Positions 26,888 through 51,597 of a stretch of DNA of 64,000 bases are shown piece after piece (position 1 is the stretch's first letter; each line of letters starts with the position of its first letter). Under the pieces are notes generated by a model. That model ran no database searches, had not been told where the DNA came from, and saw nothing but the letters and a program-made list of their open reading frames with translations. The stretch is from the NCBI RefSeq assembly GCF_032062105.1, contig NW_026933724.1:372001-436000 (forward strand), written 5' to 3'. A program made the translations under genes and the position numbers. This stretch comes from Saccostrea cucullata. Taxonomy: Eukaryota.

Positions 26888-28462
26888 ATGAATAAGACTT
26901 CGGGTAAGGAAACCTCCACAGTGAATATCACATACAAACCATCAGCAAAAGAACCTGCTGTTCCCAATAACACAAACAAAACAGCTGGAAAAGAATTCAC
27001 AGGGGTATCAACTAAGCGGCCTAATCAGAAACAACGAAATCGCCAAAAAGTTACGAAAATAATTTCTCCAAAGAAAGTGTACGCAGAATGCTCCACACAA
27101 ACCGAGGAGGAATGCTCAACAGACGTTAATCAGCTGACAAAAGCGGCTCACATTATCTACTCCTTCTGTCATACAAATGCAGGTGAACTTTTGCCCATTG
27201 AAAAAGTCTTAGATGAGTCCTCAAAGATTCTGCAGGCCCTCGCTCAACTTAGCAAGTCTTTTGACTTCTCGGACATCCCAGAATCCATTCCTTTCACCAA
27301 GAAGTTGCGAGAAGAGGTAAAATCTATTGAAAAGTGTCACAACCGCTGCAGGGAGCTTGTTTCTTCAGAAGAACTACAGTCCTTCTTGCCAAAAACAAAA
27401 CTCAAAGGCCTTGGTACACTTGTCCACTGTAAGATGCTATTAGAAGAGTTTAAGCTCAGAGAAAGAAAGTTTAGACAAGCTGTGATAAGTATTATAGAAT
27501 CTGAAAATCTGGGACTCAAAAGAGCTGAAAACATCTTGTCAAAGATGGACCACAAAGAGCAAATTCACGACTTGGTGGATAGTGTTGCAGAAAACCAGAG
27601 AATTTCCAGCAACAAAGATAAGGATGAACTGCATGACCAATACCGAGAGATAAGCATCAAGCAGAAAAACCAAATCCAGAAACTGGAGATGAAGTTAGAA
27701 AAATACGAGGAAGACAAAGAAAAGATAAGGGATGAGTGCAGAAGACAGGTGATAGAAATAGAAAAAGGTCTTATATTGTGTAATCAACAATGGGAGCGAA
27801 AACTGCAGGAACAATCAAACAAACTGGAACTGTATGATTCAGAAAAAACAAAGTTACTAAGATTACTAGAAGAAGAAAAGCAGAAGATAGCCCACAGAGA
27901 TATTGAAACCAGAAAGCTTAACAAACTGTATCACGAAACAAAAGACAAATTAAAAGAAACGGAAAAATTAAACTACAACATGTCAAAGGCCAGGCGAAAG
28001 TCCCATAAAAATTTAGTTGATAAAGCATGCAGCGCTAACCTGAAAGCAGAATATACTAGTACCCACTGCCAAACAGAAAATTCCATTTCAGTGCCCAAAT
28101 CAAACACTTCTGGTTTTAGTTCTAACACAGCTTTGTCTTCAGCTGATCAACAGAAAATGAGCTCTCACAATAAACATCAAAATCACTTCCACGGCCCAAT
28201 AAATAATGTCCATCTCTATCAAATCTTTCCTGAGAGAAGTTCTAATTCCTCAATACCTCACAAAGAATCTGTACAAAGTGGAAAGAGCAGGTCTAGCTCT
28301 CGCCTGCATATCTCTACAGGAACACGGAGGCAATCGTTGACCAATCAAAATCAAGAACAAAGCGTGACTTTTGAACACCATGAAGAGACTGAATTTGTTT
28401 ATCGCTCAGAATCAACCATGTCTTTTGCAAATTCTGATTCTCTACACGGAGACGATTATTAA
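26888..28462 (+). CDS. Array gene 6: coiled-coil protein with TQT motif and single SFANS (524 aa)
   Basis: Long ORF with coiled coil and terminal STMSFANSD. Candidate 5'UTR intron 26675-26885 (gtaagt...tcaag) ends 2 nt before ATG. Confidence 0.85.
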   Translation: MNKTSGKETSTVNITYKPSAKEPAVPNNTNKTAGKEFTGVSTKRPNQKQRNRQKVTKIISPKKVYAECSTQTEEECSTDVNQLTKAAHIIYSFCHTNAGELLPIEKVLDESSKILQALAQLSKSFDFSDIPESIPFTKKLREEVKSIEKCHNRCRELVSSEELQSFLPKTKLKGLGTLVHCKMLLEEFKLRERKFRQAVISIIESENLGLKRAENILSKMDHKEQIHDLVDSVAENQRISSNKDKDELHDQYREISIKQKNQIQKLEMKLEKYEEDKEKIRDECRRQVIEIEKGLILCNQQWERKLQEQSNKLELYDSEKTKLLRLLEEEKQKIAHRDIETRKLNKLYHETKDKLKETEKLNYNMSKARRKSHKNLVDKACSANLKAEYTSTHCQTENSISVPKSNTSGFSSNTALSSADQQKMSSHNKHQNHFHGPINNVHLYQIFPERSSNSSIPHKESVQSGKSRSSSRLHISTGTRRQSLTNQNQEQSVTFEHHEETEFVYRSESTMSFANSDSLHGDDY

Positions 28463-29188: not shown

Positions 29189-30814
29189 ATGGCTTACTGT
29201 GAGAGAAGGGCCCTAGAGAATTGTCGGACCACCCTGGTGGAAAGACTCCACCCTACAACCCAGTTCCTGGGGTGGTTTGTACAGCATGGGGTCATGAAGG
29301 GGAGAGACTTCAACAAAATTACGGTTTGTAACTGTAGCGAAAATATAACTGCCCATATTTTTTAAACAAATTTATTCACATTTTAAACATCCTATAAATT
29401 GTTTATTTTGGGATAAAAAAAATCCAAGGCATTAAAATGACTTTATCTCTCAGGAAATATATTATGGATAACAATTCTTAATTTTAGTCAAGCTACTCAA
29501 CATGTAATTTTTGTTCAGGATATAAGCACAATGTCACAGAGGACAGAAAACTTCCTCTTTCAAGTGATAGCCAGAAAACCTGGAGCTCTGAAATTCCTCA
29601 TCCACAAACTGAAGGCTGACAAACGCACAGCAGACCTCGCCAAGAAACTGAAAGATGAGGTGGAACAAGTGGAATTTATCCGCAGACAGAAGGTGGAACA
29701 AAGAAAACACAGGAAGATCCTCAAGCTCCAACAAGAACTCAGCAACCTCTACTTGTTTGCTTTTGGTGAATACTTTGTAAATGATAATTCCATAGACTTT
29801 CACTTACAAAAATTTAAGGTAGTCCGATCCTCAGGTTTATAAAATTAGCTGTTAAGTGATTAGAAATACTCATAAAAGTATCTCTGAATCCACAAAGTTA
29901 TGTAAATTTATCCACAGTATTTCTTTAAAGTTAAAGGTTTAAGTTAATCATATCATATAGGAAAAATTGTCAAAATTCCAATATTTTTGCAGAAAAAGAG
30001 AATTGGAATATCAGCAATGCATTTTCTAATTGCAAATTGATCAACAAATATATTTTAGGTTAAAAAACGATAGGTATCCAGGCATTCAGAGATACTGTCA
30101 TGATTTTTACACTTATTTGGTATTTTTTTTCTTTTATTTCCATCGTGTATTCTATATTCATAGTATAAAAGGCTTTTGGTATCATTGCAAGACACCACAA
30201 ATCACTTCTAATTTCATATCATGCTATTAAGCATTGGTATCTAAGGCTGGATTCAAGAAAATCTTATTTCTCTTAAACTGTATTAATTTTATTCCCTTTT
30301 GTAGGGTACAAATGTCAACTTTTATAAGACCTTTTCTGAGAGTTCCAAAAACGTTGAATCTTATATAGATAAATAGAATGAAAATTGTTGCATGAAAAAA
30401 AATCATTTTCAAGCTTCATTTTGATGTATTTCAAATTAAATATTAATTTTTGGAGTTATCTTTCCTGACTGAGGATCGGATATCCTTAAAGTAGCCATAA
30501 GCACAATCATTTCAGCATATCAGGAACTACAGCACACCTTTGGCCATGCTAAATCATTTCCAGAGATGGTCAAAATCATCCTGGCTAAAAATGCCGAGTT
30601 CGTTATGTGGATGAGGGAATTAGAAGCAGTACAGACAGCTATGGTAGATTTGAAATCAGACTATAAGAGAAGAACTTGTGTCATCAGGGAACAGTTAAAA
30701 AAGTATGAACAGAAGAACAAAGACCTGGAGGTTGAGAACGAGACACTCAGGCAAAATGTTGTAAGGACAAGGCAAAGTGTGTATAGAAAATCTGGTCCAC
30801 AAAAAATTGCTTAA
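29189..30814 (+). pseudogene. Array gene 7: CARD-like + coiled-coil gene interrupted by a transposon (exon1 29189-29323; exon2 29519-29817 + 30490-30814; ~252 aa when repaired)
   Basis: 135-nt first exon with a phase-0 GT-AG intron, as in the three paralogs. Removing 29818-30489 restores ...HLQKFKVAISTIISAYQELQ... in frame with ORF 30566-30814. Confidence 0.75.
29818..30485. mobile_element. TTAA-flanked non-autonomous DNA transposon (Kolobok-like) inside a coding exon
   Basis: TTAA(29814-17)-ggtagtccgatcctcag ... ctgaggatcggatatcc-TTAA(30486-89). Confidence 0.85.
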
Positions 30815-32734
30815 AAATTGATAATTAACATTCACACAACTGTTTCATTTCTTTTTCCAACAAAAACATAAACATCTCTAATTTTTTACAACAATGTTAT
30901 AACTTTGAAACGAGTTGTTATGAAACTATGCAACATATGTTGCTGTAGGTCCTAAATATGACCAAAAAGGTAAGTCAAAACAGGTATTGCATCTTAGAAA
31001 ATATTTGGTATGTTTGACAAAATATGAAACAGATGTGAAAATTGCTAAGTAAAATTGACACATGCAATTTACATTCTCAAAAAAAATACTAAGCATTAAT
31101 AAAGAAGAATAAATCACATTTATTTTTATTTTGTTTTGCTAATGTTTTTGTGCATACAGTTGTACCTGCTATTATGGACACCTTTATTCAGCAGCCACTA
31201 CCCATGAGCGACCAGTTTCAATCCTGCCCATTCATTTTTTCTCGATCTACTCCTACAGTTTTTGTCCGATTTCTTTATAACTTAGTACAAAAGATGACTA
31301 CACAAGATGCATAAATCTGTCAGATTTTTTTTTCCTGAACCTTGATGCCATGGTTACTAAAAATTTTCTGTGAAATACTTTCAAAATGCTACTTCTCCTA
31401 CAGTTTTAGTTTGATTTCAATATAATTTGGGGCACAAGTAGACTACAAGATACATAATTCTGTGCATCTGTTTTTTTTAATTTGATGAACTGTTTTGCCA
31501 TGGTTACTAAATAAAGAGAATTTCAAGTTGTTACTTCTTCTTCATACTCATTTAATATCAATATAATTTGGCATACAATAGACACCACCCTTGTTCCCTG
31601 GCATGTCTTTTACTTGTCACTTCAAGGCTTGGCACCAAATGCAATGGGAGAGGAGAAATATGCAACGGACCAGACCGGGATTCAAATCTTGGCGCCTTGA
31701 ATCTTAAGTCAGATGCTCTATCTACTGAGCAAACTTGCCATAGGCAATTGAACCTACCTGACCATTGCATTCCTATCTCCTTAAAAGACCATCCCCCAAA
31801 GACACAAATCAAGGCTCTTCCCTGGCAGTTCATTCACTTTTCACAGCTTTATTTGTAATTGGTAAGAAGAAAAAATGGTAATGTCAAGACTGGAATTTGA
31901 ATGCATAGTCAAGTGCTCTACAAACTGAGCGTTCCGGCCTCCCATAATAGAACCAGTCTTACTGCCATATATTTTTCTCCCCTTAAATGCCATCATCCCT
32001 TAAAGAAACCAACCTAGCCTCTTTCCTTGCAGGTCTTTCACCAGCCACTTTAAGATAATGGCTTGGCACCAAATGTATTGGGAGTGAAATAAAATACAAA
32101 GGACCAGACAAGGATTCAACCTGGGCCCCCTGAATCTTAAGTCTGGTGCTCTACCAACTGAGCTAGCGAGCCGGCCACAGGCAATCAAACCCAACTGACC
32201 ATCTCAATAAAAGATCCCCCCTAAAAGACACCAAACCAGGCTCTTCCCTGACAGGTCTTTCACTTGTCATGGCTTTATTTGTGATTGGCAAGAAGAAAAA
32301 TGCTACAGTCCAGACTTACATTTGAACCCAGGCCCGTGAATCTCCAGTCAGGTGCTCTACTTGCTGAGCTTTCTGGCCTCCCTTAATAGAACCAGTGTGA
32401 CTGCCACATTTACTCTTTCCAAAAAATGCCTTCAACCTGCCCCCACCCCCTCCCCCTACCCCTGGAAACCAACCAAAGCTCTTCTCGGGCAGGTCTTTCA
32501 CTGGTCACTTCAAGGGCATAGTTTGGCACTAAATGTAATGGGAGAGAGAACAATGCAATGGACAATCCCAGAATTCAAATCTGGGCCCCCGGTATCTTAT
32601 TCAGCTGCTCTATCTACTGAGCTAGCTGGCCACAGGCGACTGAACCCATCTGACCACTGCATTCCTCTCTCCTTAAAAGACCACTCCCAAAGACACCAAC
32701 CAAGGCTCTTCCGTGGCAGATCTTTCACCTGTTA

Positions 32735-33483
32735 CTGTGGAATCATTTTTATTCGTGGGGGTCAATGTTCGTGGGTAACCAAAAATGTTCTGGTTAGTAG
32801 GGACGTCGTAATTTCGTTGGTAACAAGTTCTGTTTCATTTTTTTTTTCTCCAAAGTTAAAACAAAGAAGGATAACTCCGTCAATGTTGCTTATTTAAGTT
32901 ATCTGTCTTGTGAACACAAAAATGTACCGGCGGCTTACAGCGGAAAATTACAGCCATGATGTCGCAGTAAATTATGATTATAAAGAACACCAGTTGTATG
33001 CGTAATATGTTTTGAGAACGACGACGGCAATGCCAAAATTGACTTTTAAACGTCTACCCTGAAACCAATTTATGCTAATTAGCTAATTAGCACCAACTCC
33101 AAAATCCCACTGAAAATTGATCTCATCAAAGGGGAATTTGAGCGTGTTGGACTATAATGTAAACACTACAGTAACTTAAATTTAACAGTTGTATTTACCA
33201 TTTTATTACTTATTGTATATAGTTATCGATGTCTTTGATACTTAATTTTTTTGTTTGGTTTTGTGTCAATAACCATATACAGATTGTCTTCTTTATGTGC
33301 GATCACAAGGACAAGTATAACGGTTATTTTACGATTTAAAATAGTCTGTGTAATCGTAACTTTTTAAAACAAATAATAAAACAAATGTTTGAATATACAT
33401 TAGTGGGGATGAAAATTCGTGGGTCAGGGTTACCCACGAAAGCCACGAACATTGGTCCCCCACAAACTATGATGATTCCACAG
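32735..33483. mobile_element. TA-flanked MITE inserted in the tRNA-derived array
   Basis: TIR ctgtggaatcat / atgattccacag with TA TSD. Confidence 0.8.
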
Positions 33484-34808
33484 TACTTCCAGGGCATGGC
33501 ATGGCATGGCATGGCATGGCTCTATACGTCTTTTCAGAGAGGAGTAAAATGCAACAGTCCAGACTGGAATTTGAACCCAGACCCCATGAATCTCTAGTCA
33601 GGTGCTCTGTCTGGCCACCCACAAAGAACCAGTCTGACTTCCACATTTTTCTCTCCTTAAATGCCTTCAAACCCCCCCACCCCCCCCAACCCAAGAATAA
33701 ATTCAAGCTCTGCTATGGCAGATTTTTTACCAGTCACTTCAAGGGAATGGCTTGGCACCAAACATAATGGGAGAAAATAAAATGCAACAAACCAGACTAG
33801 GATTCAAACCTGGGCCCCCTGAATCTTTAGTCAGGTGCTCTACCAACTGAGCTAGCTGGCCACTGGCTATCCAAACCATCTGGTAACTGCATTCCTCTCT
33901 CCTTAAAAGACCATCCCAAAAGATATCACCCTAGGCCCTCCCCTGGCAGGTCTTTCACTTGTTATGGCTTTATTTGTAAATAGTGAGGGGGGAAAAATTT
34001 GACAGTCCAGACTTGGATTTTAACCCCAGCCCCCTGAATCTCTAGTCAGATGATCTACTTAGTGAGCTATCAGAACAAGTCTGCTTGCCACATTTTTCTC
34101 TCCTTAAGAGCCTTCACACCCCTCCCCACCCAAAGAAATGAACCCAAGCTCTCCTCTAGCAGGTCTTTCACCAGTCACTTCAATGGAAAAGGTTTGGTAC
34201 CAAATGTAATGGGAGAGAGAAAAATGCAATGGATCAGCCCAGGATTCAAACTGGGCCACCTGAATCTTTAGCCAGGTGCTGTGCTCTATCAACTGAGCTA
34301 GCTGGCCACAGGCAACTGAACTCATCTGACCATTGCATTCCCCTCTTCTTAAAAGATCATCCCCCAAAGACACCTACCTAGGCTCTTCCCTGCCAGATAT
34401 TTCATCTGGCACTTCCAGTGCATGGCATGGGTCTATTACATTATTGGATAGGAGAAAAATGCAACAGTCCAGACTGGAATTTGAACCCAGGCCCCCTGAA
34501 TCTCTAGAAAGGTGCTCTACAATCTGAGCTATCTAGCCTCCCACAACAGAACCAGTCTGCCTGCCACATTTTTCTTTCCTTAAATGTCATCATAACCCCA
34601 AGAACCAACCAAAGCTCTTCTCTGGCAGGCTTTTCACCAGTCATGCACTTCAAGGGAATGGCTTGGCACCAGATGTAATGAGAGTTGAATTAAATGCAAC
34701 AGACCAGACGAGGATTCAAACCTGGGCCCTCTGAATCTTTAGTCAGGTGCTCTACCAGCTGAGCTAGCTGGCCACTGGCAATTGAACCCATCTGACCCCT
34801 GCATTGTA

Positions 34809-35033
34809 CTGTATAAGTGGAAATTTTAGCGAGACGCAAATTTAGTGATTTGTCCTTAAAATTTGGTAATTTAATTTTTGCGAGTAGTTATTTTAGCGAT
34901 TTTAAAATGCTCACTAAAAATCTATTTCAAATTAAACACAGTTTATTTTTTAGCAATATGTAATTTTAGCAATCTCGGAACCCTCGCTAATAATGCCAAA
35001 ATTAAATCTTCGCTAAAAATTCTGCTTATATGG
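34809..35033. mobile_element. TA-flanked MITE (same family as 57496-58742)
   Basis: ctgtataagtggaaattttagcga ... tcgctaaaaattctgcttatatgg with TA TSD. Confidence 0.78.
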
Positions 35034-36700
35034 TATGTCTTCTCCTCAAAAGACCACCCCCCCAAAGACACCATTCTAGGCTCTCTCCTGGCAAGTCTTT
35101 CACCTATCACTTCCACAGCATGGCATGGCACTATATGAAAATGGAGAGGAGTAAAATGTGACAGTCCAGACTGGAATTTGAACCCAGACCCCATGAATCT
35201 CTAGTCAGGTGCTCTACTGAATGAGCTATCTGACCTCCCACAATACAGTCAGTCTGACTGCCACATTTTACTTTCCATAAATGCCTTCACTCCCCCAAAG
35301 AACCAACCCAAGCTCTTCTCTGGCATGTCTTTCACCAGTTACTTCAACAAAATGGCTTGGCACTAAATGTAATGGGAGAAAATAAATGCAATGGACCACA
35401 CCAGGATTCAAACCAGGGCCCCCTAAATGTTTAGTCAGGTGCTCTACCAACTGACCTAGCTGGCCACAGGCAATTGAACCCTTCTGACCACTGCATTCCA
35501 CTCTTCTTAAAAGACCACCCCAAAAGACACCACCCTAGGCTCTTCCCTAGCAGGTCTTTCACTTGTCACCGTTTATTTGTAATTGGTGAGAAGAAAAATG
35601 TGACAGTCCAGACTTGGATTTTAACCCAGGCCCCCTGACTCTCTAGTCAGGTCACCCACAATACAACCAGTCTGACCCCCACATTTTTCTCCTTTAATTC
35701 TCCCCCCTCCCCCCCAAGAAACAAACCCAAGCTCTTCCCTGGCAGGTTTTTCACTGTTCACTTCAGGGGAATGGCTTGGCACCAAATGTAATGAGAGAGA
35801 GATAAATGGAATGGTTTACCAGGATTTAAGCCTGAGCTAGCTAGTCACTGGCATCAAACCAACCTTACCAATGCATCCCCCCCTGAAAAAGACCATCTCC
35901 AGAAGACTCCAAAAAAGGTTTTTCCTTGGAAGGTCTTTCACCTGTCACTTCCAGGGCATGGCATGGTTATTTATGTAACTGAAGAGAAGAAAAATGTGAC
36001 AGGTGGGACTAGAATTTCAGGCCCCCTGAATCTATAGTCAGGTGCTTTACTCACTGAGCTTTCTGGCCATCCAAAATTGAACCAGTTTGACTGCCACATT
36101 TGTTTCTCAATAAATGCCTTCAACCCACCCACCTCCAAAGAAAACAACTCAAGCTCTTCTCTGATAGGCCTTTATCATCACTTCAAGGCTTAGCACCAAA
36201 TGCAATGGGAGAGGAGAAAAATGCAATTGACCAGCCCAGGATTCAAACCTGGGTCCCCTGAATCTTAGTCAGGTTCTGTATCTACTGAGCTAGCTGACCA
36301 CAGGCAATTGAACCCATCTGAGCACTGCATTCCCCTCTCCTTTAAAGATCCCCCCAAGACACTAACCCAGCCTATTCCCTGGTAGTTTTTCACCTGTCAC
36401 AACTTCTTTTGTAATAAAATCATATGTTCTTAAATGCAGGTCACGGTTACCCACTTTTCAGTTGACTTTCTCCAAGGACCAAAGATGCAGCAACTGACAA
36501 AGTTTGATGAATGTAAGTCAATCAATACTTTATAATCCTAAATCTTTTATAATTTTTGCTTTTCGTCAATGTTAAATGAAAACACAAACTCAAATTACAT
36601 GTATTCTTGAGTTGATATTGCAATTGCCTGAAGGTGTTATGTCGGCGCAAGTGGCAAACTAAGTTTTTTGTGGCACAACTTGAAGAATCAAGTTGTAATA

Positions 36701-36887
36701 CAGTGGAGCCTCATTTATCCGGACGCTTTGGTTCCCAGTCAATTTGTCCGGATATGTGAAGCGTCCGGATATCTGAATTGCCAGTTAAATGAGACAAAAT
36801 AACATTTCAAAATTCTGTTCCCATGAATAATCGTCAGGAAAATGAAGCATCCGGATATCTGGGGTCTGGATATCTGAAGTTCCACTG
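36701..36887. mobile_element. Tc1/mariner-pogo-type MITE
   Basis: TA-cagtgga ... tccactg-TA with internal tccggata repeats. Confidence 0.7.
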
Positions 36888-38135
36888 TATTCAGATTCAG
36901 CTTTAATATGAAGGGGTATCATGTAACAGTTGTGGTCTTTTAGTTTCTGACAGAGACATGTCTCTGGTTTCTGATCACACTTCACGCCCCTTGCTGCAAT
37001 ATTTTACCTTGAAAAGGGCAAATAACTTTATTTATAACAATTTATAGCACATCCAACCTGAACCGGTATTCACAAAAAAAATACCGCGATACGTATTGTA
37101 AAGAATGAAATCGGGATACACTGGTTAACCAGTAATAACGCACAGCACTAATTATCTCCCCTTGTTTAAGGGTCAATTTCCTAGGTTTATTAAAAACAGA
37201 TGCCCTTGGGCTCAAGGATACTAAGTGACAAATTTTACTAGGCCAAAGAGTTCTTGAGTTATGGCCCATATTATTTCAAAAACTTTAAAACACTCACAAA
37301 TGGCCAAAACATTAGCTCTTTCAGCATTTGGCTCAGATGAACTAAAAACTGTATGCACAGTAGATGTAGTCTTTTGAAAGTATTTCATAAAATTTTCTAT
37401 TTTTTAGTTACCAAGGCAACATCATGTTTAAAACTCAAAATCCAATTTAAAGATTTAAATGTCTTTTCTACATTTGTGCCCAGATCACAACTGTAGAAGG
37501 AGAAGCGCAAGTTGTTACAGTTTTCAAAGGTAACTTGTGAAATTTGGATTTCAATGAATTTAAATGAAATATATGGAGATAAAAGTGTGCACAATTATTA
37601 TATTTATATGCTAATTTATGGGATAATTGTTTTGAATTAAATTGTGTCAAAACAATATGTATTTTTGTGTCCCTCTCCTAACTTAAATAACAGAAATTAT
37701 AAAATTGTACACTTCTGAACTGGAGGCATTTTTCACAAAAGAACCTGGGTAGGATATCAAAATTCTGTCATTTGTACTGTCCTACACCGTGAAACTAACA
37801 CACCTAGAGTATTTCATAATTACTGACTGGTAAAGTTCTACTGACTTTCACATATGATCACCCTTAAAGAAAAGACAATATCTTCACAAGCTTAAATTTC
37901 AAGTCTTCTTTCTTTTAAATCATTGATTCATTAAACAATTTCGTTCAAAATAGGAAACAAATTTAGAAGGAAAGTATCACATACAAATTAGAATTTGCAT
38001 GACACAGCCAGGCTAAATTTGTAAGTATTATTTAAAAAACAAATCAAATATGCAATTTATATAATTCATTTACTACACCTGAAAATATTCTTTTTAATCT
38101 AATTTTAATCTGAATTCTATTTTTTAAAGCAAAGC

Positions 38136-39268
38136 ATGGATACCAGTGAGCTGTATGCTTTGGAGACTTGTCGGAAAGACATCAGTAATAATCTTCTGGT
38201 GACCGATGCTGTTCTACGTCGACTGGAAAGTACGGACATGATATCCCACCGGGATAGAATGTGTTTCATGGTAATCAGTCTCATAAAACAATTCAATTAA
38301 ATAACTACACTTAAGGACAACTCTAAAGCAATCTTGCTCCAAAACAAAATTTACCTGCTTTTGTGCAACAATGATTTATTTTACAATAATGAATTCTGGT
38401 TTTTTTTTTGTTTCAGAGAATAAGACAGAGTTCAAAGAGAAACACCCAATTAGCAGAGATAATGCGCAAGAAAGAAAAAGGTTTCAGTGCATTTACGGAA
38501 GCTTTAATGCTTGAGAGGAACATAAACCAATACTGTGTGGATAAAATGCAAAAAATGGTGAAGCACCATAAGCAGCAGCACAGGCTCAGAGAACTAAAAG
38601 AAACAGATCTTGTCACAGATGGAAAACCATTCAGGGACACGAAAAAATGTCCCAAGCCCTCAGTGGTGTTTGAGAGCTTCTACAATTCAGTGGCTCCACT
38701 GGTTCATGGTGATAATAAAGAAAACTGTATGGAAAATACAGAGAAGCAAAGCTGTGATGGCAGTGACATTGTGAAGGCCCTCAAACACTGCAGAATGGCA
38801 CTGGATCCCAAAGAGGAAAATTCAGATGTTTCATTAAAAGACCTGCAAAGCAAATACCTTCAGAAGAAACTGCAGACCATTGCCGATGATCTTCGATCAG
38901 AAAGAAGCATGTGGAAGAAAAGGATGGAAAGTCTCCTAGTAGAAAATGATGAATTAACAACAAAAGTGGAAGAACTTGAAAGTGAGCTACAGCAGGAACG
39001 GGATGAAAAAGACAAAATAATTCGTGAAACAGTGGACAGAATTGTCAAAGAGAGGCTGCTTCGACTAAATCACGTAGATACTAAAACTTCCTCTAAACCC
39101 AGTGTGACCATCAACATTCACAACCATGGACATTTTCAAATGGGTGGTACTAATGCCATGGACCTGGACTCTGATTCAACATCAGAATCGGACCAATCAG
39201 AGAAGCCGGACTATGAGAATCAGAATACACCGGACTTCCCTGGTCTGGCAGACAGCGTTCTGTATTAA
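38136..39268 (+). CDS. Array gene 8: CARD-like + coiled coil + RHIM-like tail (exons 38136-38270, 38417-39268; 328 aa)
   Basis: Spliced N-terminus MDTSELYALETCRKDISNNLLVTDAVLRRLESTDMIS..|RIRQSSKRNTQLAEIMRKKEKGFSAFTEAL fits the six-helix CARD pattern. GT-AG intron keeps the frame. Confidence 0.82.
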
Positions 39269-39344
39269 TTGGGACCAATTTTCAAAATCTACATCAAACT
39301 CCTATTATCAATGACTTTTGAATGCTTCTGTGTGTTGTTTTACT

Positions 39345-39482
39345 TAAACAATAAAATGTTTTCTTTGGTTGTTAGTACAGAAATTAATGTCGCAGCTTCT
39401 GCAGGAAAAAATACACACAAAAATACAACAGCTGCGACATTAATCCCTGTACTTACAACAAAAGAAAGCATTTTATTGTTTA
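39345..39482. repeat. Fold-back palindrome downstream of array gene 8
   Basis: aaacaataaaatgttttctttggttgttagtacag..ttaatgtcgcagct / agctgcgacattaa..ctgtacttacaacaaaagaaagcattttattgttt. Confidence 0.8.
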
Positions 39483-41104
39483 CATTTATATCCAAATAAT
39501 CATTTAAAGTATGATTAAAAAGATTAGTTACTGTATTATTGATATGTATCACAGTACATTTCATTGATAGAACAGCCACTGATCAAGAAATCTGTACAGG
39601 TAATATGCCTAGTGTTGTTCATGAACTGATAAATGGCAATAGTTTTCTTAAGAAATAAAGGAGAAAATATTCAGTGGATGTAAATATTTTTTTTTGAAAT
39701 GGAATTAACTTAAGTGCGCAACTTGAAATGATTTTTTACTCTCAACCTTCAATGATATTAAAGTAAATATTAAGTGCCACAAAGTAATATGTTTTCATAT
39801 ATCTATATATATCAGATTTTAATTTATATGAAAATCATTCAGATCATCATACTCATTAACCCTAAGTTTATATTTTCTCATTCCTTCAAGAAATTTATAT
39901 AGTCCTATAATTCTATTTTAATAAAGCCTTCCTTTCTACCTACAGGTAAAAATAAATAATCAGAACTTCAATGTAACTCTTCATAAATTTATCAAAGAAT
40001 GCCATATAAATAAGTTACAAATAGCCACTCTAAAAGAAATTTTAGGGATACTTCTCAATATAGGTCTACTTCAAATGATCTTTGTTTACACAAAGTTCTT
40101 AATCTCCCTCAATACACAGAATGAGGGGGTCCATGTGATAATTAAAGGACAGACAGCTGCCAAAAAGGAGTACAATATTAGTGTCAATACCCCAATACAC
40201 ATTTAAAAAGTAGAGGAAATTTATTGACAGTACTCCAAACTAAGGAGTTGAACAGCGTCCAATCACCAAAATAAAGGCAATAACACGGAGAGAATTTAAA
40301 TATCCCTAGGTTGGACACTCAACATAAGGCTTTTAATTCTTGGTCATTTAAATCCAAGGTAGTCATTGACGTCACAAAGTAAATGAAATACTGACACAGT
40401 TCTAATGTAATGTTCACATGCGTTTGGGAAATCCCAGCTATTGGCACCACGATCGGACGGGTGGCATTCACAGCCTTGACCAACTGAGATTTCTGTGGGT
40501 AAGTACATAGAGTCCTCCTATCTAATACAATATGTTACATTTTTCATAACCCTTATGGTCAATTAATTTCGACAGTATTGGAAAGTCTTCTGTTCCAAGT
40601 CCTGCATAATAAAATTAAATGATAGTGACAACTGACTTGCGGACACTATCCATCAAAAGATAATTTCATGAGAATGAAATACCAATTTCAAACTATTTTT
40701 CAATTTTTGAAAGACACAATGATTAATATTTTTTTTATCTTGAAAATATTCTTTGTTTGAAATTAAGATCATATCAAAAAACGGGGTTTCTGTGTAACCA
40801 AATCAAAATTCACCTGAGGTCTTTAACTGTCATTTTTTAACAACTGTATCAATATCAAATCATTCTCTGAATTTTTAATTTATCTTACATGTTTAAGTAG
40901 TGATAAGCATGCTCCTAAAATACTGATTTTTTGCCAACTTTAACCCGATTTACGTCACGCAACTCTAAAATTGGTGTGTCTCCGTCTACTTTACTCATTT
41001 AAATGTCACAGGAGAAGACGAAAGGTGTTATGTTTTGAGAGAGGACAAGCAAATCAATTTCTTTTTTATTATCTTAAACAGGACCTTTCTCAAGAAACAC
41101 AACA

Positions 41105-42247
41105 ATGGACCCAGCAGAACGTCAGGCTCTACATAATGTTAAGGAGGAACTCCAGAATTGTGCCGTTATCACAGACAAGATGCTGGTTCACTTCTTACAG
41201 AACCAGAAAATCACAAAGGCTGAAAAATATGAACTCTCAGTAAGTAGATCTCACTTTTCCTTTAAAAGAATCTATATAAAGTTACTTTTTTTTTATACCT
41301 TAATTCATTAACTTTATCATAACTTTGAACAAGAAATTAATTCTTTCACTTGATTTTTACAGAGGCTTGGTGCCAACTGTCAGAGAGTAAAGAGAATACT
41401 GCAGATCATGAAGAACCGAAAGGAGTCTCTGAAAACTCTAACAGAAGCACTTCTTCTTGATGTGAAAAATGACTACATTGTTCAGAAACTTCGGAAGAAA
41501 GTTCGATTCTGTCGAAAACGCCTCCAAGCTCAGGAAAACCAGACATCCTCATACTTTGGGCAGCTAGATGATGTGGCAGATATTCTTTACACACGTGGAT
41601 ATTTGACAATATATGGAGAATCTAAAAAAGTCACTGCAGGGACAAGCCATCAAGCTCTGGTGGAGGACATTAACAAATTCGTTGGAGATATCACCAAATG
41701 TCGCCAGAGTTTGGAGCCTTCAAGTGAGAGACAGAGTTTTCAAGAAATCATCGCCGAATACAAAGAAAAGAAACACCAGGAAATTGAAAACGCAAAACTT
41801 GTGTGTGCCAAACTTGTGAAAAGCAAAAACAGTGACCTAGAAGATAAACAGAAGCATATCAAAGACTTACAAGATGAACTTACGAAACTGAAAGTAGAGA
41901 ATGAATCCATGCGGAAGAAAATGGGAATAGAAATCAAAACTAAGGTACAGGAGAATGTGGACCGGCTTCTAATGCTTCCTCGTCTGTCTCCCGCTGATCC
42001 CGTACCTTACGTCGAAACAGAGGAGGATATTCTGGACAGGAAGTTACGGCAGCGTTCCTCGGTAAAACGCCCCGAGCCTCAGGAACATGCTCTTTCCGAC
42101 TCGGAGTCTGACTGCGAGTCTGACAGTGATCTTCCTGTGTCAAATAAAATGACCACCTCCACGACCCAAAAAGGATCAAAAATCGTCCATAACTACAATA
42201 TCTATAACAACCATATGTACAGTGACACAAAAATTTATCAAAATTAG
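41105..42247 (+). CDS. Array gene 9: CARD-like + coiled coil + N/Y-rich tail (exons 41105-41239, 41363-42247; 339 aa)
   Basis: MDPAERQALHNVKEELQNCAVITDKMLVHFLQNQKITKAEKYELS|RLGANCQRVKRILQIMKNRKESLKTLTEALL. Donor gtaagt and acceptor tttacag are in frame. Clear paralog of gene 10. Confidence 0.88.
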
Positions 42248-43558
42248 ATAAAACTTTGTAGTGAATCGTAGATAGAAAATTGTTATGTTTTGTTAATGTT
42301 ATTAGAATGTTTAACAATTTGTTAAATTTGTTACAAATAAATTTATTAAAGTTTGTGGTTTTCTTCTTCAAATGACCTCCATACTTATATGCCTGCCAAA
42401 ATTCCTTCCCAGAATTGGTCTACCATCTTGAATTGGTGCCAAAGTCAATACTGACCACCTTTACTTACAATGCCAGAGTTAAGGGGACAAAGAATGGAAA
42501 AAAAGACCCCATTGACAGAAGGGATTTAGCATGGCTTAAAACTGGATAAAGCCATTAAGCTTAAACAGAATACACTACTTTTTGAGGAATAGATCAATAG
42601 ATTTTGGGGGAAAATATTCAATAAAGATAAAATAGGACCAATTCCATTTTAAAGTTGCAAGAAAAAGCTTGCAGAGAGTGACTCATTTCCTTCTTTTTTA
42701 GAGAGGGGAAACATAAATCTGAACCAAATTAATGTTCATTTTAATCTTCCCTTTACTGGTACTTTCAACTGACTTAACTGCATATGATATTACTGATACT
42801 AACCACAACTGTGTCAAATGTAATGGTCATTCAATTCTTTTTTAGTAGCAACTACATGTCACCTGTCAATACGTGCATATTGAACTCACTGTTTATAAGT
42901 ATATAAATCTGGGTACCCCAATAAAACCCTCCTTGGTTTACATAATACTGTTAGCTAAAAAAGATTATCAAGTTATACATGAGATTATTACACTCTTATT
43001 GGGCAATTCAAATAAAACACCAAAGGAATTCTAAGTACAATATGCATATCTATGGAATAAAAGCTTTATTTAAAGTGTAACAGGGCATTTAAATCCATAG
43101 CGATGACTCATAAACAGGTATCAATAGTACTTACAAAGTGTTTAAACAGAGACAAAAGCAGTTATCGTGAGTTCCAAATCATTGATTTTAATGCCTGAAC
43201 TGAATATAAAAAAAATATCCACTGAAATAATTTCTAACCACAAGAACATTAAATCAATTGCAGATTTCCTGATTTATGCCTTGTTTATTTTTTATTCATT
43301 TTGTAGACATATGTTTAGTCCTAAGAAAATTATTATAGTACACAATACCTGAGCGGTACTAATTAAACTATACGTCATGCAGAATTAACTTAAAAGGACA
43401 TCGTTACTACCGGGTAAATGAAATGTTATCTTGATCATGCCATTTCTTGATAAACAAGCCTGATCTAAGTTATTTGATGTCTCCGTTGATCACAAATATT
43501 TATGCACAGGCATGGACTGTGAACTATTACTATACACGTTCATGTTCATTTCAGTAAA

Positions 43559-44371
43559 AACAAGATGTGTTTGTGAAACATGATGCCCCCGTATGGCAAC
43601 ATAGCAAAGATCAAACTTTTCTTAAATGCAAGTTTAATATATTGGTACCAAAAGTAGGGTATTTTCACTGGAAATACAATTGTGAAATATGAAAGTAGAC
43701 TGAGGATAAAAATTTTATGGAAATCTTCAAGGTCAAGATCATTGGGATCCAATGAAAGGTCTTGCCACAAAAAATACATATGTAAAGTATGGAAGCCCTA
43801 GCCCTAACCGTTAAGAAGTTATGGACAAGGTTAAAAATTTTTAAAAGTAGGTCAACTCCAAGGTCAAGGGTCTTGCTATCAAATGAAAGGTCTTGTCAAA
43901 AGAATTAAATATGTAAAGTGTGAAAGCACTAGCCCTAGCCCTTTAAAAGTAATCATCAAATTTCATGGTCTAGGTCAAAGGGTCAAAGTTCTTGATATCC
44001 AATGAAGGGTCTTCTTACAAGGATTACATATGTGAAGTATGAAAGCCCTATCCCTTACCGTTAAAAAGTTATGGCCAAGGTTAAAGTTTTTTTTATAAGT
44101 ACAAAAATCTCCAAGGACAAGGTCAAAAGGTCAAGGTAATTGGTGTCCGATGAAAGGTCTTGCCACATAGAATACATATGTAAAGTATGGATGCCCTAGC
44201 CCTAACCGCTCAGAAGTTATGGTCAATGTTACAAAATTTTAAAAGTAGGTCAAGGTCAATGGGTCAAAGGTCTTGCTATGAAATAAAAGGTCTTGTCACA
44301 AGGACTAAATATGTAAAGTATAAAAGCACTATCTCTAACTCTTTAAAAGTAATGGTCAAGGTTTGCTTTTT

Positions 44372-44402
<31 letters not shown>

Positions 44403-44908
44403 AAGTTCTTGCTATCCAATGAAGGGTCTTTTCACAAGGATTACATACGTGAAGTATGAATGCCCTATCCCTTACCGTTCAAAAGTTATGGCCAAGGTTA
44501 AAATTTTTTCACAAGTAAGGAATTCTCCAAGGTCAAAGTCAAAAGGTCAAGATTGTTGGTATCCAATGAAAAGTCTTTCAACAAAGAATATATATGTGAA
44601 GAAAAAATGTCCTGGTATCTACTGTTCAAAAGATTTGGCCAAAGTAAAAGTTTGGAATTTTTGTGTAAAAGTGGGTCAAACTCCAAGGTCAAGGTCAAAA
44701 GGTCAAATTTGGTGCTACCCAAAGAAAGGTCTTGTCACAAGGAATACATAGATAAAATATGAAAGTCATAGCTCCACTAAATCAAAAGTTATGGGCAAGG
44801 TTAAAGTTTTTGTGAACAAACAGACAGAGAGACAGACAGCTAGACAGACAGATGGACACAACAAAAACTATATACCCCGAAACTTCATTTACGGGGGCAT
44901 AAAAAAAT
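43559..44908 (+). mobile_element. HINE/Helentron-type element with ggtcaagg satellite
   Basis: aacaagatgtgtttgtgaaaca start, tandem units, (GACA)n microsatellite and terminal ccccg..cgggg hairpin. Confidence 0.75.
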
Positions 44909-47900
44909 GTGAAAACATGTATACATGTGTAATCAAAACTTCGAGAGATAGAGGGTAAAAAATCAATGAAAAGTGTGTACATTTAATGGGACCCAGATCT
45001 AAGTTCGAGAGAGATCTCAAGTTCTTGAGTTTAGGAGTAAATTAGTTATATAGAGGAAAAAACTGGACCAAAGTTCACTTCAAGAGATTGAGAACTTTGA
45101 GAGGTCAGAGTTCGACCCATGGAGAGTCACCTGTATTGTCATAGCAATTCAATATCCATGCAATCAAGTTTAGCAAACTAGAACAATGCATCTGTAAGGT
45201 TTGATCAGCATAATATAATAGATCTACTCAGAGAAGGGGTAGGTTGATTTTTGTGCTACAGTAACTGCTTTTCAAAAGCAATTTCTATCTTTCATCAAAC
45301 TCTTATTCAATTTTTTGCACTTTTTCCCCAAGGTTAAGGATTTAAACATTGGTAATGCCCACTCTGATAAGATTGCCTCTCAAATAAAATTTACAGGCAA
45401 TATAATCTTCTGAATGAAAGATGTATCACAAAATAAGGATAAAACTGAACACAGAGGGATCCTTAAACAAGTGCCAATAAATTACTAACAGAGTCGGTAT
45501 TTTACCCTCCTCTGGGGAGGGTCAACCCAGACCCCCAACACGAACATGTATAAGTAAGAACTAGGTAAATACTGCCGGCTTCCAATTCAAATATTCAATT
45601 CAAATCAGCCCAGATACCACTCTGAGAAACTCAAATTAGACCTTTCAGATTTTGATTTGTTGGTTATCCAGAGAAATTCTTTTGTAGATATCAGTTAACA
45701 ACTACCTGGGAATTTGGAAACAACCTCATATTATCTTGAATGCAAAAATTGATTTTATTGGAATCACACTGAAAGCATGATTTGCATTTTGAAATAAACC
45801 TTGAATTTCAACACCAATTATTATTTCATGTAATTATCGAATTGCTTTTGCCAAGCCTTTAAAAAGTTAAGCAATAAAAAAAAACTTCTGTTTCTTTTTT
45901 AAATCTGATTCAATACTGCGGTGAATGCACAATTAAGAAATTTTACACAGCACCATTCGGTTGAATGCTTACATGCAAACTAAGAAGAATATCTGAATTC
46001 CAGGAATATTACATTTGTCAGTGGAAGACCAAAAGACCTTGTGCTTCAAGAATAACTCTGATGTATGATGTAATAAATGTGACAAAAAATGCACACTGCT
46101 AATCCATTTCTTATGATTTTGGTAATTAAAAGTAAAATTTCAAAAATATTTCAGTCTAATTGCAACAGATGAATTTCTGTCAGTTAAATTGTATACATGC
46201 ATGTATATTTATAATCTTTTATACAATTAAGACAATAAGTAAGAAATTGAAGTAAAAAATTGAACTCTGTTTTTCTCTCAACCTTCGATCCTAGATTAAA
46301 ATTAACGGTCAATTTAATTTTTCTATCACATTTTAATCCTTGTGCATAGTGCCCAATTTTTATGGCACAAAATGTAAAAAACAAAAAAAAACAACAACAA
46401 CAAAATTAGAAAATTAGAATGGAAATATTAAGCTCATTAAACATTAAGACAGGAACAGTTAAAATATTTTATTTAAAAAAAACACAAAAAAAACAGGAAA
46501 TAAGAATTGAAATATTTTAAGTCCATTATAAACACATGACAGAAAAGGTTGAAAATCATTAATTTAATAGCAGTAAAATCCAATTGCAGGTATATATGTA
46601 CCTAACATGAAGAATGCCTCTTCTAATGGCTTTACAAATGTATAGTGATTTAAGAGAATTTTTTAAGAAAGACCAGCAATCAGGTAAGAATCTTGCACCC
46701 TATAAAAATCCTATCAATTCTATTAAATCACCAAAAGTAACATATATACATTTAATTTACTACGATTCCTTGTGTGTGTGACGTCAATTGGATTAAAATA
46801 CAAGTGTACAGCGAGGGGTGACTTACCACTAAGGTGAAGGAGCTACAGTTAGAAGGATTTATATCAGTACTGTAACTAAACTAACTACCCAAAGGCAGCT
46901 GTGGTCTGGGAATAACCTAAATTAATGGTAAGTTATATTTTTCTTGCTTCTTAAAAATTAATTGATGTGATTTTTTTTCAAACATTGTCATTTATAAAAT
47001 ATAGACTAATAAAATGGATAAGATTTATAAAATTCATTTGAATACAATCTATACTTCACAAAATATTTTAAATCTTTATAAATATGAAGTTATTAAACAG
47101 AAGCCAAGCTTAAAAGTACACTGAAACTAAACAAATTGAGAGCAAACACAGAACTCTAAAATATGAAAGGTGGGATCAGGTGTCATGAAGGAGTAAACAT
47201 CCCCTGTCATCCCATCACACTTGCTGTGTGTTCCCTCTCAAGATTGGTCAATTAGTTGATTCTGAGGTCATTTTGGTAGATGCTAATTTACAGTCTTCAG
47301 AGATAGTACATAAATATCATTATTGTAAAATCAAGAAATAGCAACTGCATTTTCATATAAACAGATGATTTTTTTCGTTAACTTAAAAAAAAATTAAATA
47401 CTTGATAACATGTTATCATCTTTTATTTAATGTTTTAGCAATTAATATCAAATATTACAAATAAAAGCAAATCAAAAAAAATGAAAATCCTTATCAAGCA
47501 ATGACAGTCAAATATTTTTTTATGTCTAATAAAAAAGGGTATGTAAAGAATATACAATCGGCCCAAATGTTGAAGACATTTTGGGCCTTTTTTTAAGTTA
47601 ACAAAAACATTTTCCCATACAGTTCTTATCCGATTTTTTTTCTATTTACTGCAAAGAAATCAATAACAGATGTGGGGCCCTATACCTCAATTATTTTTTT
47701 TTAATAACAAGTGGTTTTAACTGATCAATTAACATACTTAAAATTGAGAAATTTAGAATGTGGGACTAGTGCATGACTTGTTCAAATTTAATGCATTTTT
47801 ATTTTTAGGTTGTTTGATAACCCCTTCATTTTAACAGGAATTATAAACCAAATTGTCAGATCTACTTCATTCACTTTTGAGGTGAAAAAAAGGGAAATGA

Positions 47901-48434
47901 TCTTTGATTAATGGTCTTCAAAAGTTTTGGAGAATTTACTAGATTTGCCTCTATTGGGCTGTAATTTTTTAAGAGTGTAATAAAAAGAGTATACTTGTAA
48001 AATAAAGATTTTTTTCTTAAAATTGTATGGTAAAAAAAAATGTATAGAAAAACATCCTTAATTCAAAAATAGGTAGAAATCAAAGAGAACCTGTCATGAA
48101 TAAGACACTGGTCCTCTTTATCACAGAGTAGGGAAAGGGAATATATGCAATCAGAAAATAAATAGGGGGTTTTGGGGTCTACTTCTCAAGATCTCAATCC
48201 TGCAGTTCAAGGAAAAACAAGTAGACCAATACAGGTGGTGGGCTACTGTCTTTTTAAATTCAAACACATGGATGACTCACCGTTTGGCACCAGGTTATCG
48301 TCTTTTGTTTCAAGACTGATACTAGTAATCTTTAGTTACATAGGATCATTATAGGTTTAGTCTAACTTTGAACAATTCCATGAGAAAGTCTCAGACCTCT
48401 GATTTTTCTTTGAAGCAGAGGGAATATTCAGAAG

Positions 48435-49602
48435 ATGGACTCTGCAGAGAAACAGGCATTACATAACTTGAGACATGACTTACAGAGCCACATGGTGATC
48501 ACAGATCGCATTCTCAGGCACTTACTACAACACAATAAAATCAACAAAACCGAGAAACATGACTTGTCAGTAAGTATTAGAAATCCTTACTTCTTTGGCA
48601 TAAATTAGTCTTCTACTAATAAGATTTTTAAAAAATATTTTCTACTAGTGGTTTTTGTAATTTTTGAACTTTTATATGTCAGTTTTGCAATTGATGTCTA
48701 ATTATTATTTTTTCCAGATTCATGGAGCTTCTTCACAAAAGATTAAGAAGCTGATACAGATCTTACAACACCGAGAGCAGCCCCTACAGGTGATGACAGA
48801 TGCCCTCTTGTTGGAGACAAGAAACATTTTTATTGTTAAAAAACTAAATAAGAAAGTGAGATATTATCGTTCAAGGCAAGAGCAGGAAGAAAACAAAATA
48901 AATAACAGCAATTGTAATCAGCTTCAACCAATCAGTGAAATTCTGTTTAAAAGGGGATATGCTGTTGTTTATGGTACATGTCATAAGCTGGCATATCCCA
49001 AAGGACATCAAAAACTAGTGGAGGGAATGAATGTCTTCATGAAAACAATAGAGGACTGTAGGGATACCTTCAATGGGTGTGAAACCAGACATTTCCAAGA
49101 CATTGTTAAAGATTACTGTAACAAAAAGGAAAAAGAAATCAAGGATGCCAAAGCCCTTTGTGCCAAATTAGTCAAGACTAAAAACTGTGAACTTGATCAG
49201 AAAGCTGGGGAAATGAGTTCCCTTAAAGAAGAAGTGGAAAAGCTCAGAAGGGAAAACGAAAAAATACGCAAAAATATGGATCAAGAAGTTCGTGAAAAAG
49301 TTCGAGAGGGTGTCCGACAGAGTTTACTGTCCATGCCTATGCTGAGTTCGTGTCTGGGTTTAAGGACAACTAGTATGGGCAGGGCACGAGAACACTCCGA
49401 GTCTTCTGGGTTTTCTGGGAATAGTGACACAGGGTCCACATCTTCCTCTGACCCCCGGGAGGACAGCGAGGATGAGGAGGGATTTAATACGGAGACTACG
49501 GACACTTACAGTGAGGCTGGCCAATCAGCAACGAGGATCACCCACAATTACAACATCTACAACAACTACATGTATAGTGAAGCTAGGCTTTATCAGTCCT
49601 AA
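48435..49602 (+). CDS. Array gene 10: CARD-like + coiled coil + N/Y-rich tail (exons 48435-48569, 48718-49602; 339 aa)
   Basis: MDSAEKQALHNLRHDLQSHMVITDRILRHLLQHNKINKTEKHDLS|IHGASSQKIKKLIQILQHREQPLQVMTDALL. Same exon length and phase as genes 7-9, and colinear with gene 9. Confidence 0.88.
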
Positions 49603-51597
49603 CCAATCAAACAAGCCAATACAACAACTACATGTATAGTGAAGCTAGGCTTTATCAGAGCTAACCAATCAAATCCTACAACATTAACCAATGTAAAAAT
49701 GTAAATACCTTGTTGTTACTTTATTTATAATTTTATATTTTACAAAAGATTATTAAATTATATATAATAATCAAAATTTACACATTTTTATTTAAAATTT
49801 TTATCATATGTTAATTTTTATAATTGCAAAATGTGCCAAGTAACATAGAGCCTTTACTTAATTAAATATTTTAATTATAAATAAGAGGAGCCTACTATGT
49901 ATTATAAAAGTTTATATTATTTTCCATTCATAGTTTAAGTGTGTGATGTGTGAATATAATTGGAATGACTTGTATTTATGCCAGATTATTAAGCTGAGAG
50001 TAACTTTAGAATTTTGTATATATTTCACTTTATAAAAGACCTGCAAGGTTTACATTGTTACACACAAAAGAAGTTTTTATATTTACATTGAAATTTATTT
50101 AAATGCCTTCCTCCAAAAGAAAACTGTTCTTTTAAAGTATTGTACGTCTTCCAGAGCTCTGTTATCACTGCCCTTCATAAGTTTTTGATCTTTAGCCAAA
50201 ATCACTATTCCCATGCTGCCTTGAACATTGTGAAATAATTCAAAACTTCCTATACCCTCATGCTTGCTCTTTGTTATAACATGTTAGTAACAGTTTAACA
50301 GAAAGCTGAATTTAGTTCCAATTCATCTGGCATGTTCCACCCAGGGATCATCCTCTAGTTCCCAGTTCTGTGTTATCATTCTAGACAATCACATTATAAA
50401 TTTATTTACATTTTTTGTTAAGTTTTGTAAATATTTATTGTTATAACTTGTTATGTGAAAACATCATGTGAATCTGATGTTGGATTTTTGAACTTTTAGG
50501 ATCAGCATATTACTGATCTCTTAATCCAGTAGTGTCCTTTGTTTTGTAGTTATCTGGACATTAGCTATGGTTAAGGAGTTAGTTATGCATTTGTTAAAGG
50601 TTAACTTCTATAAGTACCTGCCCTGTTATGTTTGTTTCTGAAATAAATTCAATATAAAAATTGATGAGATTTTGTTTTTCTTTCATGAATGAACTTAAAG
50701 GATTAAAAGATTTTATGGTGCAATTTTCCACCATTCATGAGCCTTTAGAAAAAAGAATTTAGTCCTTTCACTCACTGAAGTGTTAAGAACCTTATGAAAA
50801 TCTGGGTGGAAAGTCTTGAGTAATTCTAGTAACAGAACCACTTCAAAAGCTATGTAGTTAAATACTGTGAAAAATCATAATCTTTTAGCACCAATATCCT
50901 TTTTATAAGAAACAAGTAACTTAAGATGAAGTGCCAGTAATGTTATTAAATAAGAAATTATATCCTCTCTTTAAAACTGGAATGATTTTCAAATTATGCA
51001 TTCTTAGAGACTTTTGCACTTAAAATAATAGGAGATAATGCAGTAGTTACAACAGATATTCTGTTACTCTATGTCACCTATTATTATTGTGAATGTAATG
51101 CACTTTTAGGTAGCAGTTGAAATATACACAGTGTGCTGCCTACCCAGAGTAACAGCAGAGATATCCTGTTACTCAGTTAGACCCCTACTCTTGGAGTAGG
51201 AATTCTAATATTACAGGTATTTTATAAACAAGTTAGACATGTATTGTAACTAGCAGTAGAAATATCCTGCTACCCAGTAAGCCATCAGTAGAGAGATATT
51301 CTGTTACTCTCCTTCTTTAAGTAACAGTCAAGATATTCTGCTACTCTCCTTCTTTAAGTAACAGTAGAGATATTCCGTTACTACCCTAAGTATCAGTAGA
51401 GATATACTGTTACTACTCAAGTAGCAGCAGTAATATTCTGTTATAAGTACAATAGAGATATTCTATTACTACTTTTAGTAATACTAGAGATATTCTGATA
51501 CTACTTTAAGTAACACTAGAGATATTCTCTACTTGAAGTATCAGAAGACATGTTCTATTACTACTCTTGGTAATAATAGAGATATTCTCTTACTTTT

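Follow-up and report, generated by a model that had tools for sequence, protein, structure and literature searches.

Proteins that carry a CARD, such as CARD9, BCL10, Apaf-1 and RAIDD, act by homotypic binding and helical polymerisation. A coiled coil beside the CARD raises the local CARD concentration and seeds filaments; the coiled coil of CARD9 is long. In oysters, innate-immune and cell-death gene families are greatly expanded, and most of their members are unnamed. Here we analyse a stretch of 64,000 nucleotides (nt) from the hooded oyster Saccostrea cucullata (assembly GCF_032062105.1, contig NW_026933724.1, positions 372,001 to 436,000), referred to as the window and numbered from its first nucleotide. 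It is AT-rich and carries four tandem genes on the + strand, which we call genes 1 to 4. We consider it highly probable (roughly 85%) that they belong to a tandem cluster of paralogous oyster genes for BCL10-like adaptors that pair a CARD with a coiled coil.

Among described systems, BCL10 has no coiled coil and consists of a CARD and a Ser/Thr-rich tail, with a motif rich in proline close to the C-terminus. Its mollusc homologues are smaller than BCL10, align with it over the CARD only, and likewise bear such a proline-rich motif towards their C-terminal end (Staal et al., bioRxiv 10.1101/046789). Homologues of the CARD-CC proteins, which combine a CARD with a coiled coil (CARD9, CARD10/11/14), are present in invertebrates that have BCL10, molluscs included (Staal et al., PMC5978004). 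The oyster genes resemble both systems in part and match neither in full.

Gene layout and splice junctions

In each of the four genes, the first coding exon extends from an ATG over 135 nt (45 codons) and ends directly before a GT donor (GTTTGT, GTAATC, GTAAGT, and GTAAGT in genes 1 to 4). The introns, which end in a pyrimidine tract and AG, are in phase 0, and the frame runs from exon 1 into a long downstream open reading frame (ORF) in all four genes (Table 1). Within the CARD, the intron separates helix 3 from helix 4. Genes 2-4 have no second intron before the stop codon and code for products of 328, 339, and 339 aa.

An earlier sequence-only reading of the window had reported these four exons with their identical length and their phase-0 introns, and its observation is confirmed from the sequence at all coordinates. 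It had also remarked that a list of ORFs misses the domain, and the first exons are indeed absent from that list. Such a hidden status applies to a prokaryote-style ORF track only. Genes 3 and 4 are correctly modelled in RefSeq, where proteins P0039 (gene 3) and P0040 (gene 4) are identical, residue for residue, to the translations of exon 1 plus exon 2.

RNA-seq reads of run X21 and an RNA contig of run X1 show the junction of gene 3 (41239>41363, 123 nt skipped, GT..AG). The reads of gene 3 also join a 5' non-coding exon, which ends at ~40498 with a GTAAGT donor, to position ~41082. The 135 nt are thus the coding part only, and the exon itself is slightly longer; the real exons begin upstream of the ATG at an acceptor. 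Transcript contigs with an uninterrupted ORF, and thus with the same junction, were found for gene 3 orthologues in one run and for gene 4 orthologues in three others, all four runs being independent; the gene 4 contigs are intronless transcripts from Magallana gigas. For gene 1, the junction is based on conservation against Saccostrea echinata, where donor and acceptor are kept. The case of gene 2, which has no read cover, is taken up further below.

Evidence for the CARD from predicted fold and sequence

Tests for a CARD were made on single exons from the window, on the RefSeq proteins of genes 3 and 4, and on orthologues. Two structure models were obtained with AlphaFold2 (AF2). For P0001:1-110, which differs from gene 3 at two of 110 residues, the model has six helices at a pLDDT of 86.3. 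For the gene 2 orthologue (P0017:155-265), pLDDT is 94.5 and pTM 0.83, and helix 1 is kinked at residue 12, as is usual in CARDs. The death fold expected from the sequence-only reading is thus recovered as a predicted antiparallel bundle of six helices with a kinked helix 1.

The first match in Foldseek was the CARD of Apaf-1 (TM 0.79 by target). VIA-align scored the gene 3 and gene 2 orthologue models at Z 12.8 and 14.0 (2.1 and 1.8 Å over 98 residues), with the caveat for this tool that values of Z 12-14 may arise by chance for helical bundles. The top 50 entries from VIA-align are CARDs, save one CARD-derived design, and include no DD, DED, or PYD.

At the sequence level, the Pfam CARD family (PF00619, death-fold superfamily) has a curated cut-off of 23.9 bits. 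The N-terminus of the M. gigas orthologue exceeds it with 24.7 bits, and the Pinctada protein P0026 reaches 22.6 bits. For most family members, CARD is the top Pfam family. Single exons gave borderline results for gene 1 (14.2 bits, E 0.045) and gene 4 (E 0.059), both over model positions 1-39 of 85, and no Pfam CARD match for genes 2 and 3.

A family profile from six sequences (A1) matched the BCL10 CARD in the PDB with E 1.3e-7. With eleven sequences (A2), BCL10 was found at 5.3e-8, followed by RAIDD (1.7e-4), Apaf-1 (4e-3), and then CARD8 and NOD1; nearly all of the 27 PDB matches to this profile are CARDs. BCL10 is the best relative in the PDB; it leads the second-best CARD by ~11 bits and is aligned over its full length. 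A single sequence (P0013:1-100) already finds BCL10 in the PDB at E 1.8e-4. The distant profile matches P0025 and P0033 are multi-CARD proteins.

The interpretation given in the sequence-only reading is thereby supported. For the N-termini of genes 2-4 it is borne out by the family profile, which matches both BCL10 (5e-8) and RAIDD (1.7e-4), a protein that the reading had named, and by the fold. Predicted fold and sequence kinship together support an assignment of these three N-termini as CARDs.

Gene 1 and its transposon

Gene 1 is the most divergent of the four genes. It has in common with the others the gene structure, the orientation, the position in the tandem array, and a downstream coiled-coil segment. 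Its first coding exon is 94% identical, without gaps, to positions 9469-9603 of the syntenic S. echinata locus L001. When aligned with the family profile by hhalign, exon 1 covers columns 1-40 (P 2.2e-5) and exon 2 covers columns 51-93 (P 0.008, which is weak); the two alignments are in the register expected for an intron after column 45. The proposal that gene 1, too, carries a CARD thus gains weak alignment support, with both exon halves in register, and we regard its N-terminus as very probably a CARD by sequence. Among PDB chains, phmmer found no match for exon 1. A match of exon 2 to Mu B was set aside as chance.

The second exon of gene 1 is interrupted by a miniature inverted-repeat transposable element (MITE) of 668 bp with terminal inverted repeats of ~17 nt and TTAA on both sides (repeat arms 29813-29834 and 30469-30490). 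The MITE brings a stop codon into the gene 1 frame (29840-29842), and in this assembly it truncates gene 1 to little more than the CARD. It is absent from the syntenic site in S. echinata, where the reading frame is unbroken. A first look at the genome gave more than 3,500 candidate copies, and the 40 that were scored are full length with 90-100% identity. Thousands of candidate copies, several of them 100% identical, indicate that the MITE has been active recently.

Protein architecture and proposed function

The proteins have ~330-340 aa and consist of the CARD (~residues 1-95), a linker, a short putative coiled coil, an acidic Ser-rich stretch, and an end that is rich in N/Y/I/V. We infer by analogy that they function as adaptors which polymerise through CARD-CARD contacts. 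The coiled coil would oligomerise the protein and so bring the CARDs together. CARDs clustered in this way might nucleate helical CARD-CARD filaments together with a different CARD protein, or be incorporated into such filaments, and candidate partners would be a BCL10-like protein, a caspase, or a CARD-bearing sensor of the NLR type. The paralogues would then be cytosolic signal adaptors in innate immunity or cell death.

Comparison with known CARD proteins and alternative readings

The CARDs of RAIDD/CRADD, Apaf-1, and caspase-9 have the same fold and gave the best structural scores (Z 12.6-14.0, 1.6-2.1 Å). In contrast to these proteins, the oyster proteins are devoid of a death domain, an NB-ARC domain, and a protease domain.

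The domain order, an N-terminal CARD and then a putative coiled coil, resembles that of the CARD-CC proteins, and so does the presumed path from oligomerisation to filament seeding. CARD-CC homologues have been reported in molluscs (PMC5978004). In addition, the CARDs of CARD9 and CARMA1 are among the structural matches, at Z 9-11. The oyster proteins might thus be molluscan CARD-CC proteins of the CARD9/CARMA type, that is, upstream nucleators which seed BCL10 filaments after phosphorylation has released their autoinhibition. We consider this rather unlikely. Searched against the PDB, the family profile found no CARD9 or CARD11 chain at E<=1, whereas BCL10 was found at 5e-8, and the oyster CARD sequence is thus not detectably CARD9/11-like. 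By weak matches, the putative coiled coil spans ~70-80 residues, which would be much shorter than the long coiled coil of CARD9, and a MAGUK part is absent.

The oyster CARD aligns with the human BCL10 CARD from end to end (5e-8) and superimposes on it at Z 11.7 (2.1 Å, 99 residues), and a Ser-rich region follows the CARD in both. With BCL10 the best solved relative by a wide margin, the genes could be oyster BCL10 orthologues that have undergone a lineage-specific expansion, their products forming a filament core that recruits a MALT1-like paracaspase downstream of a CARD-CC protein. This appears unlikely to us, as the architecture differs. Mollusc BCL10 as described by Staal et al. is smaller and has a proline-rich end, whereas the oyster proteins (330-340 aa) are ~100 residues longer than BCL10, have a putative coiled coil and N/Y-rich tails, and are without the proline-rich C-terminal motif. 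They are, furthermore, encoded by at least six tandem paralogues that were found in pteriomorph bivalves only, and the 18 family-profile matches among 1.84 billion proteins include no BCL10 of other phyla. The sequence is BCL10-like in an architecture that is not that of BCL10, and the domain order is CARD-CC-like with no sequence match to CARD9/11. We place the family among the CARD proteins and assign it to neither BCL10 nor CARD-CC.

A more specific proposal is based on the protein ends. The N/Y/I/V-rich tails of genes 3 and 4 (42179-42247 and 49534-49602) are near-identical to each other; they are kept in S. echinata, and M. gigas has a variant of them. The motif of gene 2 (39104-39166) is a distinct one, rich in I/N/H/Q/G, which recalls a RHIM core. 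The tails are thus conserved between species and differ between paralogue subgroups. The proteins could be bivalve-specific adaptors that join a CARD filament module of the BCL10 type to a C-terminal, amyloid-forming, RHIM-like motif, with the subgroup differences in this motif giving each paralogue its own partner and the MITE-cut gene 1 acting as a decoy. We regard this as quite improbable. A Pfam scan of the three tails alone and of the whole last exon of gene 2 gave no match for the tails or for RHIM, and a PDB search with the gene 2 tail gave no match and no solved RHIM chain.

Several results weigh against our preferred reading of the cluster as BCL10-like CARD and coiled-coil adaptors, in addition to the caveat on structural scores and the weak alignment of gene 1 exon 2 mentioned above. 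While the close orthologue from M. gigas passes the Pfam cut-off, the proteins of the window stay below it: gene 4 (P0040:1-100) reaches 21.3 bits (E 2.7e-4), the gene 2 orthologue 16.9 bits, and the gene 3 protein has no Pfam CARD match. Gene 2 has no RNA cover in three RNA-seq runs, in which the reads are several per cent unlike the window, so that a likeness threshold of 95% may lose reads; its junction is based on the S. echinata gene model P0017 and on exon conservation in two other species. The coiled-coil region is delimited by weak matches to several coiled-coil families, ~100 residues past the CARD (exon residues ~150-220 in gene 2), and by reading the sequence. Finally, a literature search by gene identifiers found nothing and no link of the family to immunity. 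That the domains are generic helical bundles, or of another death-fold class (DD, DED, PYD), would fit the scores below the Pfam cut-off, the missing Pfam match of gene 3, and the inflation of structural scores for small helical domains, but is very improbable given PDB profile matches that are almost all CARDs, a kinked helix 1, a structural top 50 of CARDs and one CARD-derived design with no DD, DED, or PYD, and a close orthologue above the cut-off.

Conservation against other oysters

The four genes were compared with the syntenic locus L001 of S. echinata. The first coding exons have 135 nt in both species and are 86-94% identical without gaps, and the second exons match at 88-91% over their first 300 nt, also without gaps. 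In contrast, the introns show only 58-70% identity with 9-40 gap columns and differ in length, with GT..AG kept. The ratio of nonsynonymous to synonymous differences (pN/pS) lies at 0-0.07 in genes 2-4; in gene 1 it is 0.29 for exon 1 and 0.13 for exon 2. In all four genes, the exons are under purifying selection while the introns decay. The exon of 45 codons followed by GT is, for gene 2, also kept in a contig from a third oyster (L011 924-1058).

The NCBI model for this locus in S. echinata (P0017, 482 aa; L001 9469-14675) differs from the structure described here. Its first residue is a Met inside the gene 1 orthologue, so that the CARD exons of that gene (L001 9469-9603; 9806 onward) are left out. 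Via a small exon at ~10934-10999 the model then splices into the gene 2 orthologue, so that the gene 1 tail is fused to gene 2. Either the model is a fusion, or the transcript reads through from one gene into the next.

Between genes 1 and 2, window positions 30947-37678 were found to have no counterpart in the syntenic S. echinata locus (L001 10565-13094). The region includes a 4-kb part with 43-45% G+C, compared to ~34% around it, and is probably inserted mobile DNA that has pushed genes 1 and 2 apart.

Family members, distribution, and ancestry

The cluster has at least six tandem paralogues: besides the four inside the window, an assembly-wide search places at least two more a short way upstream on this contig. 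One of the latter is intact (P0032, 333 aa; L002 3610-5164, corresponding to contig positions 365610-367164) and has a first coding exon of 135 nt (L002 3610-3744). The second (L002 8961-9815, contig positions 370961-371815) has a clean second exon and a degenerate first exon, of which fragments are found at L002 ~7839-7923 in two frames and with stops.

In Pinctada imbricata (VSWD01000011.1, 44.74-44.79 Mb; L005, L006), two family members lie side by side, which indicates that the tandem arrangement is old. They adjoin a gene for a protein of 816 aa with a Pfam CARD. One of the two has the same 135-nt exon and phase-0 intron, and the other has an intron at the homologous column. The Pinctada model P0026 has an intron of 25.8 kb and a first exon that is nine codons shorter; this model may be mis-joined.

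From the identical exon length, the sequence-only reading had concluded that the four domains have a common ancestor. This conclusion holds up well, with the intron after codon 45 also present in a fifth paralogue outside the window and in Pinctada. An identical exon length implies one ancestral intron and an N-terminal half that has remained free of indels. The shared intron is older than the split between oysters and pearl oysters. Pairwise comparison resolves three old subgroups: one holds genes 3 and 4 together with Pinctada P0026, one pairs gene 2 and P0024, and one joins P0032 to Pinctada P0027. The strong divergence among the CARDs that had been noted earlier is real (20-53% identity between paralogues). 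It would allow different partners for each CARD, as had been suggested, which is a guess.

A library search with the family profile returned 18 proteins at E<=0.001. Those with names come from Saccostrea and Pinctada, plus one repetitive fish protein; two unnamed ones are multi-CARD proteins. Orthologues from Magallana and Crassostrea were found by word search. The family appears to be restricted to pteriomorph bivalves. P0028 (fish) and P0034, which match in multiple stretches, are repetitive and have no CARD by Pfam, were set aside.

Genes 3 and 4 and their orthologues are annotated in S. cucullata (XP_062577304.1, XP_062577305.1) and S. echinata (XP_061183121.1, XP_061183119.1). These entries have the same splice junction as described here. 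An automatic UniProt label, 'CARD domain-containing protein', is attached to the M. gigas orthologue (A0A8W8N5B3), and all others are called 'uncharacterized protein'. With a known domain, two genes already in RefSeq, and an orthologue already labelled CARD, the finding is correct but ordinary and changes no concept. Modest new results are the family-wide intron, the narrow distribution, the unannotated CARD of gene 1, and the fused S. echinata model. The cluster provides a handle for annotation, as in the case of the gene 1 CARD exons that are lacking in the S. echinata model. The cluster also defines a small family, restricted to bivalves, in which the position of the intron is fixed and ancient and the old subgroups number at least three, and it supplies candidates for how the axis of CARD-CC, BCL10, and paracaspase is wired in molluscs.

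Feature coordinates and additional observations

Table 1. Features of the four genes in window coordinates.
Feature	Coordinates	Strand	Evidence
Gene 1, first coding exon, coding part (45 codons, CARD helices 1-3)	29189..29323	+	Pfam CARD E 0.045; hhalign P 2.2e-5
Gene 1, intron, phase 0, GT..AG, 195 nt	29324..29518	+	64% identity to S. echinata, 13 gap columns; 202 nt there
Gene 1, second coding exon, portion before the MITE (second half of CARD, linker)	29519..29817	+	Frame continues; hhalign P 0.008; 88% identity
MITE in gene 1 exon 2	29818..30485	.	Terminal inverted repeats, TTAA on both sides
Gene 1, continuation past the MITE, coiled-coil region	30488..30781	+	tblastn of P0017 residues 35-132, 82% identity
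Gene 2, first coding exon, coding part (45 codons)	38136..38270	+	ATG to GT; 86% nt identity to S. echinata, pN/pS 0.03
Gene 2, intron, phase 0, GT..AG, 146 nt	38271..38416	+	70% identity to S. echinata, 23 gap columns
Gene 2, last exon: CARD helices 4-6 (to ~38570), linker, coiled coil, acidic Ser-rich stretch, stop	38417..39268	+	Model of orthologue P0017:155-265
Gene 3, second exon: 23 nt of 5' untranslated region and 45 codons from ATG at 41105	41082..41239	+	RNA reads
Gene 3, intron, phase 0, GT..AG, 123 nt	41240..41362	+	Reads of X21, RNA contig of X1
Gene 3, last exon: CARD helices 4-6 (to ~41512), linker, coiled coil, acidic Ser-rich stretch, N/Y-rich tail, stop	41363..42247	+	P0039; RNA depth across the exon
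Gene 4, first coding exon, coding part (45 codons)	48435..48569	+	pN/pS 0.02 against S. echinata
Gene 4, intron, phase 0, GT..AG, 148 nt	48570..48717	+	60% identity, 40 gap columns; 176 nt in S. echinata
Gene 4, last exon: CARD helices 4-6 (to ~48867), linker, coiled coil, acidic Ser-rich stretch, N/Y-rich tail, stop	48718..49602	+	P0040

Right after the stop codon of gene 4, the last 14 codons occur again (49620-49661), with 100% protein identity to the end of the S. echinata protein. As one stretch from S. echinata aligns twice, the 3' end of gene 4 has undergone a small tandem duplication. Across gene 3 (41100-42250), RNA reads deposited with the species label of the window show dozens of fixed differences from it in ~1.1 kb, which suggests a divergent lineage or a cryptic species within that label. 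In a region outside genes 2 and 3 (39617-39763), RNA depth is very high in every run, and the reads continue into unlike sequence on both sides; the region is a short dispersed repeat.

The ORFs at 5545-6822, 12122-13591, 16222-20168, and 26888-28462 were considered as further family members and rejected, as they have no similarity to the CARD family. Several long ORFs in this upstream part of the window (5545-28462) are single-exon and of the coiled-coil type, with no Pfam family; the S. echinata counterpart of the one at 26888-28462 has 524 aa. Downstream of the cluster, the ORF at 54205-54840 has a match to an Importin 13 repeat.

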